From assembly GCF_046119375.1 (NCBI RefSeq), contig NW_027362762.1, forward strand, positions 516,646,001 through 516,710,000: a stretch of DNA of 64,000 bases. The letters are read 5' to 3'. Below are positions 1 through 8,390 of the stretch, piece after piece; position 1 is the stretch's first letter, and each line of letters begins with the position of its first letter. The notes beneath the pieces are model-generated. The model worked only from the letters and a program-made list of their open reading frames with translations. It was not told the DNA's origin and searched no databases. Made by a program: the position numbers and the translations under genes. Origin of the DNA: Phyllobates terribilis (Eukaryota).

Positions 1-1
1 T

Positions 2-138
2 GCCAGCAACGAAGGGCTGGGCGCTGTCCTAAGTCAGAAGCAGAATGGCCAAGAAAAGGTGATCGCATACGCAAGCAGGAAGCTCCGCCCGACCGAGAGG
101 AACCCAGAGAACTACAGCAGCTTTAAGTTGGAGTTCTT
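2..138 (+). pseudogene. Gypsy/Ty3 pol fragment (RNase H), truncated at junction with CR1
   Basis: Translates ASNEGLGAVLSQKQNGQEKVIAYASRKLRPTERNPENYSSFKLEF, the DASxxGLGAVLSQ...AYASR...ERNY...LE motif of Gypsy RT-associated RNase H. Confidence 0.9.
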
Positions 139-171
139 TTTCTGGCCTTTTGCTTCCCTTCCCACATTGTT

Positions 172-1138
172 CTAGTTTAAAGCTTTTCTGATGAGTGTAG
201 CAAGGCGACTTCCAAATACATGTTTTCCAGTCTTCGTAAGGTGCACCCCATCTCTAGCAAGTAGTCCATCGTATAGGTAATTCATTCCGTGATCCAGAAA
301 TCCAAATCCTTGTTGACGGCACCATCGACGTAGCCAGTTGTTCACCTGTAGAATCTTATTCCACCTCATTGTTCCATGGCCATCCACTGGGAGGATGGAT
401 GAGAAGACCACCTGCGCTCCCAATTCTTTCACTTTCTTGCCTAAGTCTTCAAAGTCACTGCAGATGGTTTCCAGGTCCTTTCTTGCGGTGTCATTTGTCC
501 CCACATGTATTAGCAGGAATGGGTAGTGATCTGTAGGTCTGAAGAGTCTTGATATCCTGTCAGACACATCTTTAATTTTTGCTCCTGGAAGACAGCACAT
601 TTCTCTTGAGGTTATGTCTGGTCTGCAGATAGCGGCCTCTGTTCCTCTTAACAGGGAATCCCCCATGACCACCACTCTCCGTTTTTTCTTCACAACATTC
701 TTCTTTCTCCATCCAGGAGGATTCTGAGGGCTTACAAGGTTATTCATTGCTGGCAAAGTCTTATTTTGCTGTATTTCTTCATGGTTCTCCTGCGTGAGAG
801 CCTGGTACTGGTTCCTGAGCAGTATGGGTGCTGACTGCCTCTCGATCCTCCTGCTTCTGTGGGTCACATGCTTCCATTCCTCTGTTTCATCAGGTGCAGT
901 TCGAATTTCTTCTCTTTCTGAATCATGAAGAGATAATTCTGCTCTGTCTAAGAACTCTTCACCTTCCTTAATGATTAATGATCAAGGTAGTTAACCTCTC
1001 TTCTAGATTTCGCAACTTTTCCTCCAACAGGGACACAAGCTTGCATTTCTGGCATGTGAAGTTTGGCTTTTCCACTGGCAAGTCTGTGAACATGTAGCAG
1101 GATATGCAGCTCACCAAATGGCTCCTGGACTCTTCCAT
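172..1138 (-). pseudogene. CR1-type LINE ORF1 (Cys-rich N-terminus + coiled coil + SGNH esterase-like domain), frameshifted
   Basis: ATG at 1138, then CISC...CQKC and a coiled coil. C-terminal ORF has GDSLLRG, HVGTND and DGVHL (SGNH blocks). A 7-bp tandem duplication TAATGAT (969-975/976-982) splits the ORF; removing it gives one continuous frame. Confidence 0.9.
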
Positions 1139-1217
1139 GTTCTTATTGTTAATGTTCTGAAAACAGTGAAAAAAGCTAAAAAAAAAAGCTTTAAAATGCA
1201 CGCGCCGGTAGGCGCGC

Positions 1218-3687
1218 GGTTTACCAATGTCCTCATTTCAGCTCCAACAGCCAAAATCCAGTGTTCTTTGAGCTCGCGGAGACTCTTCACTTACCCCAAA
1301 ATGCAGTGGGAATATGCAAATTATCTCCTCAGGACTCCTCCCCTGGTTTGCCGATGTCCTCTTTTCAGCTCCAACAGCCAAAATCCAGTGTTCTTTGAGC
1401 TCGCGGAGACTCTTCACTTACCCCAAAATGCAGTGGGAATATGCAAATTATCTCCTCAGGACTCCTCCCATGGTTTGCCGATGTCCTCTTTTCAGCTCCA
1501 ACAGCTAAAATCCAGTGTTCTTTGAGCTCCCGGAGACTCTTCACTTACCCCAAAATGCAGTGGGAATATGCAAATTATCTCCTCAGGACTCCTCCCCTGG
1601 TTTGCCGATGTCCTCTTTTCAGCTCCAGCAGCCAAAATCCAGTGTTCTTTGAGCTCGCGGAGACTCTTCACTTACCCCAAAATGCAGTGGGAATATGCAA
1701 ATTATCTCCTCAGGACTCCTCCCATGGTTTGCCGATGTCCTCTTTTCAGCTCCAACAGCCAAAATCCAGTGTTCTTTGAGCTCCCGGAGACTCTTCACTT
1801 ACCCCAAAATGCAGTGGGAATATGCAAATTATCTCCTCAGGACTCCTCCCCTGGTTTGCCGATGTCCTCTTTTCAGCTCCAGCAGCCAAAATCCAGTGTT
1901 CTTTGAGCTCGCGGAGACTCTTCACTTACCCCAAAATGCAGTGGGAATATGCAAATTATCTCCTCAGAACTCCTCCCCTGGTTTGCCGATGTCCTCTTTT
2001 CAGCTCCAGCAGCCAAAATCCAGTGTTCTTTGAGCTCGCGGAGACTCTTCACTTACCCCAAAATGCAGTGGGAATATGCAAATTATCTCCTCAGGACTCC
2101 TCCCCTGGTTTGCCGATGTCCTCTTTTCAGCTCCAGCAGCCAAAATCCAGTGTTCTTTGAGCTCGCGGAGACTCTTCACTTACCCCAAAATGCAGTGGGA
2201 ATATGCAAATTATCTCCTCAGGACTCCTCCCCTGGTTTGCCGATGTCCTCTTTTCAGCTCCAGCAGCCAAAATCCAGTGTTCTTTGAGCTCGCGGAGACT
2301 CTTCACTTACCCCAAAATGCAGTGGGAATATGCAAATTATCTCCTCAGGACTCCTCCCCTGGTTTGCCAATGTCCTCTTTTCAGCTCCAGCAGCCAAAAT
2401 CCAGTGTTCTTTGAGCTCGCGGAGACTCTTCACTTACCCCAAAATGCAGTGGGAATATGCAAATTATCTCCTCAGGACTCCTCCCCTGGTTTGCCGATGT
2501 CCTCTTTTCAGCTCCAGCAGCCAAAATTCAGTGTTCTTTGAGCTCGCGGAGACTCTTCACTTACCCCAAAATGCAGTGGGAATATGCAAATTATCTCCTC
2601 AGGACTCCTCCCCTGGTTTGCCGATGTCCTCTTTTCAGCTCCAGCAGCCAAAATCCAGTGTTCTTTGAGCTCGCGGAGACTCTTCACTTACCCCAAAATG
2701 CAGTGGGAATATGCAAATTATCTCCTCAGGACTCCTCCCCTGGTTTGCCGATGTCCTCTTTTCAGCTCCAGCAGCCAAAATCCAGTGTTCTTTGAGCTCG
2801 CGGAGACTCTTCACTTACCCCAAAATGCAGTGGGAATATGCAAATTATCTCCTCAGGACTCCTCCCCTGGTTTGCCGATGTCCTCTTTTCAGCTCCAGCA
2901 GCCAAAATCCAGTGTTCTTTGAGCTCGCGGAGACTCTTCACTTACCCCAAAATGCAGTGGGAATATGCAAATTATCTCCTCAGGACTCCTCCCCTGGTTT
3001 GCCGATGTCCTCTTTTCAGCTCCAGCAGCCAAAATCCAGTGTTCTTTGAGCTCGCGGAAACTCTTCACTTACCCCAAAATGCAGTGGGAATATGCAAATT
3101 ATCTCCTCAGGACTCCTCCCCTGGTTTGCCGATGTCCTCTTTTCAGCTCCAGCAGCCAAAATCCAGTGTTCTTTGAGCTCGCGGAGACTCTTCACTTACC
3201 CCAAAATGCAGTGGGAATATGCAAATTATCTCCTCAGGACTCCTCCCCTGGTTTGCCGATGTCCTCTTTTCAGCTCCAGCAGCCAAAATCCAGTGTTCTT
3301 TGAGCTCGCGGAGACTCTTCACTTACCCCAAAATGCAGTGGGAATATGCAAATTATCTCCTCAGGACTCCTCCCCTGGTTTGCCGATGTCCTCTTTTCAG
3401 CTCCAACAGCCAAAATCCAGTGTTCTTTGAGCTCGCGGAGACTCTTCACTTACCCCAAAATGCAGTGGGAATATGCAAATTATCTCCTCAGGACTCCTCC
3501 CCTGGTTTGCCGATGTCCTCTTTTCAGCTCCAACAGCCAAAATCCAGTGTTCTTTGAGCTCGCGGAGACTCTTCACTTACCCCAAAATGCAGTGGGAATA
3601 TGCAAATTATCTCCTCAGGACTCCTCACTTACCCCAAAATGCAGTGGGAATATGCAAATTATCTCCTCAGGACTCCTCCCCTGGTTT
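1218..3687 (-). repeat. Tandem array of 127-bp monomers (about 19.5 copies) directly upstream of CR1 ORF1; probable LINE 5' UTR/promoter
   Basis: ATGCAAAT recurs every 127 bp from 1314 to 3600, plus a 52-bp truncated unit (3652). Copies are near-identical. The array abuts the ORF1 leader and ends abruptly at Gypsy integrase sequence. Confidence 0.95.
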
Positions 3688-4613
3688 ACATCATCATCGA
3701 CCTGCTGAAGACCATACCACTTGAGGAGAGAAATCAGTGGCCAGACCTACTACCTGACCTAGTGGATCTGTACAACCACATACCCGTGAGTTCCATCAAT
3801 TGTACTCCGGCATACCTTATGCATGCATGACCTGGGAAGTTGCCCTTGGATCTGGAGCTTGGTGTAGTAGAACCAGAAGTGGATGTGACCACTGAGGACT
3901 GGGACACAACCAGACAAGAGCAGTACAGAAGGGTACAAGCCTGTGTCGAGGACAGTCTCACTCGGGTGAGGGATAAGCAGGAGGCCCACTGCAACAAAAG
4001 TGCTCCCGCAGGGCCTTTCACACCTGGTGAAATAGTATTTTAAAGGAAAAGAAGGAACCACAAACTTGATGACCAGTGGGAGAAAGAACCCTACACTGTG
4101 CTGAAGTCAAGATTTGATAATAAGAAGACCTGCATAATTAGTAGAGATGGAGGAAGAACGTCCGCGACAGTATCCAGGGACCATCTAAAGTTGTGTCCAA
4201 ATCTACTGAAGCCCCAGGAAGGAGTGCCTCTCACAGTACCGGAGGAGCCTAAAGAAGCAGTGATACACACTGATTTAGGAGATTTCCCGGCAGATTGGCC
4301 CCAACTAGGAGGAGCAGTAATCATCCCTGTACTCACCTTCTACCCAGAGCAAGAAGACCCTATAAGTGCTGCAGAAGAGCCTGCTCAAGAAGAGTCCCCA
4401 GAAGAAGGATCCCCGGTTGGAGCAGAGCAAGCAGGCCCAGCCAATGGTATGCTTGCTAGTCCAGTAGAGAGGTCAATGCAGTCTTGTAGCCCCTCCACAC
4501 CTAGTCTTAACACATTGGGAGGTAGTGCACCTATTAGTGCTTCACGCATCCCAGGCCCACGCAGATCAACACGTAGCACGAGAGGTCAACCCCCTGTCAG
4601 ATACACTGAGTAA
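3688..4613 (+). pseudogene. Gypsy pol integrase C-terminal region with in-frame stops
   Basis: IIIDLLKTIPLEERNQWPDLLPDLVDLYNH...TPAYLM*..LPLDL, then a GPF-type motif (GPFTPGEIV) and terminal RRSTRSTRGQPPVRY. Stops at 3828-3830 and 4041-4043. Confidence 0.85.
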
Positions 4614-5010: not shown

Positions 5011-6138
5011 TGTGGCGCTCAGCTGCGCTGGGAGCCACAGATCCTAGGGGGTGTATTAAAGGATTCCTCCACAAGAGGCCCCCATAAGCATTCACACACC
5101 CCCACCTTCCACCTCAGACCACCAGAGGGAGCCCGTTAGGGATATAAATAGGGAAGGTGGAGCTAGGCAGTTAGTTAGTCTGGAATCGACAGTGAGTCAA
5201 GCCTGTTGAGAGAGTTCCCGCAGAAGATGAGCCTGAGAGAGGTCAGCCTGCAGAGGAGCCCAGTCCAGACTCAGGAACTCAAGTACGTGAGCCCAAGGCG
5301 TGCCGACGCCTGTAAGAGCGGTGAAGAGCGGCAAGCTGCCGTTAGTGTGAGTAGCCTAGTGAGGGCCCGAGCGCGGCCGAAGGCGAGTGGAAAGTGAGTA
5401 GCAGTGGGGGCAGAGGAGCTTACCCAGCTCACCGCGAAACATATACCGGACACCGGGTCCGAGCTTACCGGGATCTCTACGACCCAGTAAGGCATAACCG
5501 GAATCCCTGGAGAATTACAGGTCCCAGGATCACCAGAGAGCTGATACGTAGCAGAGCCAGGAGACACATAGGCCCCGTAAGCTGGGAGCGTGCACTCCAA
5601 GAGAAGGCCCTACCACAACGTCAGCCGGTGCAGGACAGAGACAGAGTTAGGCCTAGCTTTAGGCAGGTCAGAAACTTACTACGCAGAGGCAAGAAGCAGG
5701 AGGCCCTATACCCGCTCATTGGGGAGGATCCTGATATGCACCCTTCACCCTACAGTGCTCCGGGATGTGCCTGAATTACCACCAGTAAAAGGTACCGAAG
5801 TGACTATCGTGTCCGTCCCTGTTCTTGCTCTGACCAGGCTGGGTCTCGCCTGTCCTGCATCCCCCTCTCCATACACTGCCCTGAGGCCTAGCTCCACCTG
5901 TGGGGAGCTATACCATCAAGCTGCCTTATCACCGGCCTCAGCGGACTGCCGCAGCGCTGGTGATTCTCACCAGAAACCACAGGTGGCGTCACGAACTTCC
6001 ATAAAATTAGCAAACCAAACCACCCTTTTTAAAAGAGAGGCCCAGAGTACGGGCCCGGGAGCCGACCACCACGACATCCCCAAGGTCAGGCAAATGGCCC
6101 GGGTACCGAGTCGTCCCCATCCCCCTGGGCTAGTCACA
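5011..6138 (+). mobile_element. 3' LTR of the Gypsy element (TGTGG...GTCACA), preceded by a polypurine tract
   Basis: PPT AGGGGGGAA (5002-5010) is immediately followed by TGTGG. Terminal GTCACA at 6133-6138. Homologous to the LTR at 62839. The right boundary could alternatively be CCACA at 5981. Confidence 0.75.
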
Positions 6139-6590
6139 TGGTACCCCCCATCCCCCAACACTGGTATGTATGGTACCCAATCCCTTATCCTGGTATGCAT
6201 GGCTTTCTCATCCCCAATCCTGGTATGTATGGCCCCCTCATCCCTATCCTGGTATGCATGGTACTCCTCATCCCCCAAACCTGGTATGCATGGTACCCCT
6301 ATCCCCCAATCCTGGTATGCATGGTAACCTTCATCTCCCAATCCTGGTATGCGTGGTACCCCTCATCCCCCAATCCTGGTATGCATGGTCCCCTCACTCC
6401 CAATCCTGGTATGCATGGTCCCCTCATCCCCCAATCCTGGTATGCATGGCACCCCTCACCCCCCAATCCTGGTATGCATGGTACCCCTTACCACTCAATC
6501 CTGGTATGTATGATACCCCTCATCCCCCAATCCTGGTATGTGTGGCCGCCTCACCCCCCAATCCTGGTATGCATGGTACCCCTCATCCCT
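6139..6590. repeat. Minisatellite, about 31-32 bp unit (TGGTACCCCTCATCCCCCAATCCTGGTATGCA), roughly 14 copies
   Basis: Direct reading of repeated CAATCCTGGTATGCATGGTACCCC units. Confidence 0.9.
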
Positions 6591-7234: not shown

Positions 7235-8390
7235 TAATAATGAAAGGCCACATAGGCTGCAACACCATTAAGCAAGAGGCACCACTAACCAAACAACACC
7301 ATGATGACCAAGGAGATCTCCAAACAAGTCTAGAACAAAGTTGTTGAGAAGTACAAGTCAGAGTTGGGTTACAAAAAAATATCCAATTCTCTGATGATCC
7401 CCTGGAGCACAATCAAATCCATTATCATCAAATGGAAAGAACATGGTACCACAACAAACCTGCCAAGAGAGGGCTGCCCACCAAAACGCTCAGCCCGGGC
7501 ATGGAGGGTATTAATCAGAGAGGCAGCACAGAGACCAAAAGATAACCCTGAAGGAGCTGAAGAGTTCCCAAGCAAAGGCTGGAGTATCTGTCCATACGAC
7601 CACAATAAGCCGTACATTCCACAGAGGTGTAAGACTCGTTTTGAGTTTGCCAAAAAACATGTGGGAGACTCCCCAAATGTATGGAGGAATGTGCTGTGAT
7701 CAGATGAGACCAAAATTTAACTTTTTGGCCACCAAGGTAAAGACTATGTATGGCGCCAAACCAACACAGCTCATCACCCCAAGAACACCATCCTCACACT
7801 GAAACTTGATGGTGGCAGCATTTTGCTATGGGGATAATTTTCTTCAACAGGGACAGGGAAAATGGTCCAAGTCAACTGGAAGATGAATGGTGCGAAATAC
7901 AGGGATATTCTTAAGCAAAACCTGTTCCAGTCTGTCAGTGATTTGAGACTGGGACGAGGTTCAGCTTCAAACAAAACAGTGACCCAGAGTATACTGCTAA
8001 AGCAACACTCGAGTGGTTAGAGGGGAAACGTGTAAATGTTTTGGCGTGGCCTAGTCAAAGCCCAGACCTTTATCCAATTGAGAATCTGTGGTCAGACTTG
8101 AAGACTGCTGTTCACTAGAGGAAACCCTCTAACTTGAAGGAGTTGGAGCAGTTTTGCCTTGAGGAATGGGCAAAAATCTCAATGGCAAGATGTGGAAAGC
8201 TCATAGAGACTTATCCAAAGTGACTTGCAGTTGTAATTGCCACAAAAGGAGTCTCTACAAAGTACTGACTTTAGGGGGGTGAATAGTTATGCACACTGAA
8301 GATTTTAGTTATAAAAACAGTGAAATTTCAGGTTATGAGGTAGCAAAACATGAAAAATGCCAAAGGGGTAAATACTTTCGCAAGCCACTG
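7235..8390 (+). mobile_element. Decayed Tc1 element, left end missing
   Basis: Broken transposase (MGYKKIS...KEHGTTTNLPREG, WPSQSPDL). Right TIR ...TTTCGCAAGCCACTG followed by TA. Same family as 21142-22790. Confidence 0.85.

Follow-up and report, generated by a model that had tools for sequence, protein, structure and literature searches.

Near the start of a 64,000-nt stretch of Phyllobates terribilis DNA (the window; NCBI RefSeq assembly GCF_046119375.1, contig NW_027362762.1, positions 516,646,001 to 516,710,000 of the forward strand) lies the 5' part of a CR1-type long interspersed nuclear element (LINE). The fragment is oriented on the minus strand and comprises a leader of tandem 127-bp monomers, a short non-repeated tether and the first open reading frame (ORF1). 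An initial annotation of this sequence had read the monomers as an Oct-responsive promoter, from any unit of which the transcript could be spliced to an acceptor just ahead of ORF1; the segment that would be removed is referred to below as the proposed intron. The features of the fragment, numbered from the first letter of the window, are as follows.

136 to 3689, minus strand: 5' fragment of a CR1-type LINE with leader and ORF1 and without ORF2 (ORF1 match to Dendrobates tinctorius P0001; contig depth and loose ends; 5' junction)
172 to 1138, minus strand: ORF1, encoding a Cys-rich N-terminus, a coiled-coil-like stretch and a GDSL/SGNH esterase (translations, Pfam, tblastn)
1139 to 1221, minus strand: non-repeated tether of 83 nt from the last monomer to the ORF1 ATG, unique within the window
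1157 to 1187, minus strand: T-rich tract and acceptor-like CAG, with its AG at 1158/1157, 18 nt ahead of the ORF1 ATG (1138-1136)
1199 to 1218, minus strand: GC hairpin with an 8-bp stem and a 4-nt loop (from the fold), inside the proposed intron, between array and ORF1
1218 to 3626, minus strand: tandem monomers with a 127-bp period, each with an octamer and GGG/GTAAGT (Tandem Repeats Finder, TRF: 19.0 copies, 98% matches; unit-by-unit listing)
1289 to 1297, minus strand: nearest donor-like GGG/GTAAGT, with GT at 1294/1293 and seven contiguous matches to the 5' splice-site consensus (-1 to +6)
1314 to 1321, minus strand: octamer ATTTGCAT nearest ORF1; the others lie at +127n up to 3607, with one more at 3659
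3567 to 3689, minus strand: 5'-most shortened units with a 52-bp period and an internal loss of 75 nt (second TRF row and sequence)

The element is identified by its ORF1. The esterase part matches Pfam Lipase_GDSL_2 (6.2e-08, 33.8 bits, cut-off 32.9), and the N-terminus gives a weak match to PHD_2 (E 0.023, 14.6 bits, under the cut-off of 28), with a visible and conserved Cys pattern of the form C-x2-C...C-x2-C. The closest protein is the unnamed D. tinctorius P0001, with 89-90% identity, and 172 ORF1 homologues, most of them unnamed proteins, were found in frogs, squamates, turtles, crocodilians and birds. In the relatives L002-L004, an ORF with an Exo_endo_phos domain (APE-type endonuclease) directly follows ORF1. 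The combination of an esterase ORF1 with an APE-type endonuclease next to it in relatives therefore places the element, by predicted domain content, in the esterase-ORF1 LINE type that is usually named CR1 or CR1-like; this class rests on ORF1 and the relatives' endonuclease. An esterase-type ORF1 is known from LINEs of the CR1/L2 group through the ORF1 protein of ZfL2-1 (PMC3905857). As in ZfL2-1, the SGNH/GDSL esterase domain follows a Cys-rich and coiled-coil N-terminal part; the likeness is confined to the type of ORF1, since the ZfL2-1 work is silent on monomer leaders and on splicing (PMC3905857).

The copy at this locus is dead. Its ORF1 runs into a stop after 56 codons, with a frame shift near 976-982, where it carries 4 bases more than most copies, and ORF2 is missing from the copy and from the window. 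The window also lacks the 3' part of the element, where a LINE of this type would have its characteristic hairpin or microsatellite end. The source LINE is a young element of a dendrobatid frog. Homology to the family ends at 136, as judged by contig depth and loose ends, and the 5' junction with unrelated DNA lies at ~3689. A search of positions 1-4200 against Rfam returned no family.

The array region holds 20 octamers ATTTGCAT on the minus strand and none on the plus strand, and the other 60 kb of the window hold 3. The string GGGGTAAGT occurs 20 times in the window, always in the array and on the minus strand, with no occurrence in the other 60 kb, and GGG/GTAAGT lies 15 nt past the octamer in each unit (n = 20, all on the minus strand). 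These motif counts, together with the TRF period, bear out the 127-bp units, the 20 octamers and the donor in each unit of the initial annotation, whose coordinates for the nearest GT (1294), the AG (1158-1157), the polypyrimidine tract and the ATG (1138) are also right. Pyrimidines make up 14 of the 16 bases ahead of the acceptor-like CAG. The monomer had further been described as free of ATG on the sense strand except in two variant units. This holds for the consensus unit; the leader contains three sense-strand ATGs rather than two, at 1725 and 1471 (both CCATGGG variants) and at 1236 (in the last unit, itself a variant). The 5' end of the element coincides with the monomer start AAACCAGGGG. 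At the other end of the leader, the tether of other copies differs from the one seen here at 1176, 1178, 1192, 1200, 1207 and 1209.

The units share 98-99% identity, so the 20 copies of a motif in the array count as a single independent observation. With the rest of the window as the chance background, GGTAAGT or GTAAGT is expected in a single 127-nt sense unit with p ~0.004-0.02, an acceptor of equal quality in an 85-nt tether with p ~0.02-0.07, and both jointly with ~1e-4 to 1e-3. The corresponding values are p ~0.003 for the octamer and p ~0.07 for an ATG-free unit. The pair of donor and acceptor is thus unlikely to arise by chance at a place chosen beforehand; here, the selection was post hoc.

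The units of this array share a private variant. A C is present at 1350 and at the equivalent sense position of every unit here except the last, and a T occupies this position in more than 95% of the monomer contigs of three runs. The array with C at 1350 is therefore either locally homogenised or derived from a minor subfamily.

Association of the array with the LINE

Copies of the family elsewhere were compared through assembled contigs from four sequencing runs, covering positions 1-1430: X1 (DNA), X14 and X16 (guessed to be RNA) and X21 (certified RNA). In X14, one contig (record 15) runs from 982 to 1215 and then into monomer sequence, so that ORF1, tether and monomer are continuous, and in X16 another (record 22) spans 982-1239. 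The same array is thus found upstream of ORF1 in other copies and in independent runs, which disposes of the case in which the monomer is a free satellite that happens to lie next to this ORF1. The boundaries of other copies agree with this result. Among the loose ends listed, three or four contig junctions to unrelated flanks fall at 1344-1349, the same monomer position as the 5' end at ~3689. Junctions at a shared monomer position fit a start site at the monomer boundary, with few junctions to go by.

Summed contig depth in the DNA run X1 amounts to ~20,000 over ORF1 and to ~7,600 over the tether, and it reaches 70,000-98,000 in the monomers. By these depths, each leader-bearing copy carries roughly 10-30 monomers. 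The distant relative L005, whose ORF1 is ~50% identical, carries the octamer ATTTGCAT in its leader as well. A protein search with the ORF running along the monomer array as query gave no match.

Taken together, the array is part of the LINE and forms a tandem monomer leader laid out like the promoter of mouse L1. By analogy with that system, the promoter function proposed in the initial annotation is plausible, and we treat the array as a candidate promoter. A separate observation concerns position 1313: X14 and X16 each contain a contig of ~250 nt that leaves the monomer within the octamer and continues into foreign sequence shared by the two. The contig stems either from a single truncated copy that is fixed or from a transcript that is chimeric.

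Splice-like motifs in the leader

The proposed intron would measure 138 nt + 127n. The monomers contain no acceptor-like site, and exon 1 would have a normal length of 54-55 nt if transcription started at the monomer boundary. Because a further AG, at 1177/1176, intervenes between the T10 run and the acceptor, the branch point is confined to 1175-1162, and A1167, the sole A in this interval, is the only branch candidate. Its distance to the 3' splice site is 10 nt, short of the usual ~18-40 nt.

Neither L001 (ORF1 71% identical) nor L002 (57%) retains the acceptor at the corresponding position. Among the leader alignments to relatives, only that to L002 rises above shuffled sequences, at the GC hairpin (L002:31-52); those to L001, L003, L004 and L005 do not. 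The stem of the hairpin is perfect in L002 and in most family copies, with loops TACC, TGCC or TAAC, and the pair at 1200, which is G-U in this copy, is G-C in most copies (sense C). The hairpin could serve as a cis element of the RNA or as a promoter site. Folded over its full length, the leader shows no exceptional structure (z = -1.5).

The sense strand of the L005 leader contains three GTGAGT in 614 nt, versus ~0.24 expected from the window rate, and that of L004 contains one. A likeness of the L005 leader to the monomer had been seen by eye and was dropped, as the alignment was no better than shuffles. The leaders of three relatives show further features of their own. L005:150-520 holds ATTTGCAT, a TATAAAA ~60 nt on, the direct repeat GGCGCGAGCC twice and the three sense GTGAGT at distances of ~100 nt. 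L003 and L004 carry motifs resembling acceptors or donors near the ORF1 ATG. L003:1-75 holds a (TTTC)n run and CTCTTGCAG, 63 nt ahead of the ORF1 ATG. In L004:290-356, TAG/GTGAGT is followed by CTAAC and by a TAG 2 nt before the ATG, a spacing too short for an intron. A metagenome scan with one protein gave no match, and a metagenome alignment scan gave 80 distant loci of bird/reptile type, whose leaders have neither octamer nor GTRAGT.

The joint expected from splicing, 1295>1156, is absent from the 17,358 contigs of the DNA run X1 and from X14 and X16, and the contigs of X14 and X16 that cross the acceptor are all unspliced. Five joints were listed in total, each leading from 1189-1221 to 1345-1351, and none of them has GT..AG ends. 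Two of these, which skip 129 nt, were considered as splices and rejected; they correspond to the ordinary junction between the last monomer and the tether, placed on the neighbouring unit. The other three, from 1189/1199 and with a depth of 4-6, were likewise rejected and look like rare copies with a hairpin-less tether. Since joints of depth 4-8 are reported, detection reaches near the single-copy level. Set against the tether depth of ~7,600, the depth of ~4-8 for the rarest contigs suggests that leader-bearing copies number in the order of 1,000, and the share of spliced retrocopies is therefore roughly below ~0.3%, a rough bound that depends on an inferred single-copy depth.

Because the template of LINE proteins is their own encoding RNA, a spliced RNA that was common should have left spliced insertions behind. 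SpIREs, the spliced retrocopies of human L1, make up ~2% of full-length L1PA1-6 elements (Larson et al. 2018, PMC5860796). The claim that transcripts are spliced from any monomer to the site before ORF1 thus finds no support in the three runs with contigs and is further weakened by the poor branch geometry and by the lack of a conserved acceptor in L001 and L002. The short ORF1 mRNA that had been expected from such splicing would not result either, because removal of an intron from the 5'UTR (5' untranslated region) leaves ORF2 on the RNA. Because the history of the family shows no trace of copied spliced RNA, the donor and acceptor motifs are better treated as candidates for promoter elements or for binding of U1.

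Sequence flanking the fragment

The CR1 fragment is bordered on one side by part of a long terminal repeat (LTR) retrotransposon and on the other by ORF pieces that may belong to it.

1 to 135, plus strand: RNase H part of an LTR-retrotransposon pol (Pfam RT_RNaseH_2, 1.3e-10), with loose ends at 136, where it abuts the CR1 fragment
3690 to 4613, plus strand: ORF pieces resembling the C-terminal part of the same pol (ORFs with no Pfam match; putative assignment to pol)

About 1 kb of pol, corresponding to the integrase core, and the whole of the CR1 ORF2 are missing at the locus. A single deletion that followed insertion of the CR1 element into pol in antisense orientation would explain this layout. 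Further along the window, a 32-bp tandem repeat occupies 6137-6589 (14.6 copies, 82% matches), and an ORF at 7364-7699 on the plus strand resembles, by eye, the N-terminal part of a Tc1-type transposase.

Candidate functions of the leader and related systems

On balance, the leader is probably, if only just, an internal promoter built of monomers with an octamer site, from which an unspliced RNA transposes and in which the germline makes little or no use of the splice-like motifs. The monomers would act as an internal promoter for RNA polymerase II, with the octamer as a candidate site for a POU factor. A reading as a Staf/ZNF143 site was also considered; by eye, the site in question falls 2 nt short of that consensus. 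Transcription would start at the monomer boundary AAACCAGGGG; the units downstream of the start would be carried along in the transcript and so restore the promoter of each new copy. The lack of spliced retrocopies indirectly indicates that the transposing RNA is unspliced; donor and acceptor would be used, if at all, in too few germline transcripts for any spliced copy to become fixed. The donor motif may be part of the promoter core, or a binding site for U1 that does not lead to splicing. A precedent for a donor with a second role is found in human L1, where a splice donor is kept since it overlaps a RUNX3 site (PMC5860796).

Several points weigh against this reading. A search for runs that contain the sequence turned up none recorded as RNA, and X21, the one certified RNA run, has 0 reads on positions 1-1430 and hence carries no weight. 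In X14 and X16, depth tracks DNA copy number within ~3-fold over the LTR pol, ORF1, tether and monomers, and because of this we do not count these runs as RNA; they may be DNA. Logan contigs may lose rare variants, and the estimate of copy number is rough. The evidence on the start of transcription comes from a handful of 5' junctions. Finally, with a donor of seven consensus matches, a T-rich CAG acceptor and so low a joint chance, some splicing in vivo would not be surprising.

The most direct alternative, and an unlikely one in our assessment, is that the leader contains a genuine spliceosomal intron, in which any monomer donor is joined to the acceptor before the ATG. The spliced RNA would be a short-leader messenger for protein and the unspliced RNA would transpose, so that splicing would act as a regulatory switch. 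The strength, orientation and low chance probability of donor and acceptor would suit such an intron, as would its length in steps of one monomer with no acceptor-like site within the units, the normal exon 1, the ATG-free consensus monomer and the sense-strand GTGAGT in the L004 and L005 leaders. However, every run with contigs, the deep DNA run included, lacks the spliced joint, although cis-acting LINE proteins should leave retrocopies of a spliced RNA, as they do in human L1. The only branch A compatible with the AG at 1157 is too close to it, the acceptor has no counterpart at the homologous place in L001 and L002, a conserved hairpin sits within the supposed intron, and the retention of ORF2 on the spliced RNA leaves no short ORF1 mRNA. 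A variant of this idea would account for the absent retrocopies as well. In this variant, the leader intron is real and contains the promoter; the spliced RNA is an efficient messenger for ORF1p and ORF2p and is kept from being copied, as the GC hairpin, a cis element for packaging or reverse transcription, lies in the intron, and only unspliced RNA transposes. We regard this as very unlikely.

The motifs could also be fortuitous. The splice-like motifs, and perhaps the octamer, would then be chance features of a unit amplified 20-fold, and the array a satellite-like growth of a leader segment with no promoter role. Such an origin would agree with 20 copies counting as one observation, with motifs chosen post hoc among many possible ones and with the local homogenisation that the private C of the array units, except the last, would reflect. 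It is distinctly unlikely all the same: many members of the family come with a monomer array, the octamer recurs in L005, the joint chance of the motifs is low, and a LINE needs an internal promoter, for which the 83-nt tether shows no other candidate. Ranking after it in probability is the possibility that the donor motifs are binding sites for the U1 small nuclear ribonucleoprotein (snRNP) that act without splicing. Promoter-proximal 5' splice sites stimulate transcription, and the sites in the leader could in this way boost initiation or elongation, or could guard the LINE RNA against premature cleavage and polyadenylation (telescripting). A perfect GTAAGT in each unit, ~52 nt past the inferred start and on the sense strand only, would be well placed for this role, spliced products were not found, and the L005 leader has an excess of GTGAGT on its sense strand. 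U1 telescripting itself is established in human, mouse and fly (PMC5499120). On the other side, bird-type CR1 leaders lack such motifs, and the sense strand of ORF1 holds one ATTAAA and no AATAAA, so that the visible part of the element gives no clear reason for protection.

If the leader is indeed an L1-style monomer promoter in a CR1 LINE, promoters built from repeats arose independently in two LINE clades. It would also offer a handle on the activation of a LINE that is both young and abundant, in a frog genome of 6 Gb. Splicing of the leader, if true, would amount to a division of labour between messenger and template in a LINE. Literature searches turned up no account of a CR1 leader made of monomers, and CR1 goes unmentioned in the D. 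tinctorius genome paper.

The leader can be compared with those of several known elements. Haas et al. are said to have reported in 2001 that the promoters of chicken CR1 lie in the 5'UTR, internal to the element and in its leader, and that leaders vary between subfamilies. To our knowledge, tandem monomers have not been described for the chicken CR1 5'UTR. The element described here resembles chicken CR1 in that the leader of a CR1 LINE is a candidate internal promoter, but the bird-type leaders examined carry neither the octamer nor GTRAGT. The parallel with U1 telescripting (PMC5499120) is that 5' splice-site motifs can act unspliced; telescripting is known for no LINE leader array, and the array would be a candidate. 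Like the leaders that give rise to human L1 SpIREs (PMC5860796), this one has a consensus donor and acceptor on the sense strand, between which splicing would take out promoter sequence. Unlike in human L1, the contigs of the deep DNA run include no spliced retrocopy, and spliced RNA was not observed either.

The closest parallel in layout is the mouse L1 5'UTR, which consists of tandem A, Gf or Tf monomers and a tether (PMC9022269, PMC11602158). In both leaders, the 5' end is a series of sense-oriented monomers whose number varies among copies, ORF1 is preceded by a short tether outside the repeat, and each unit contains a factor site. In contrast to mouse L1, the frog element is of CR1 type with an esterase ORF1, its unit measures 127 bp rather than ~200 bp and carries an octamer in place of a YY1 site, and its leader is a candidate promoter.

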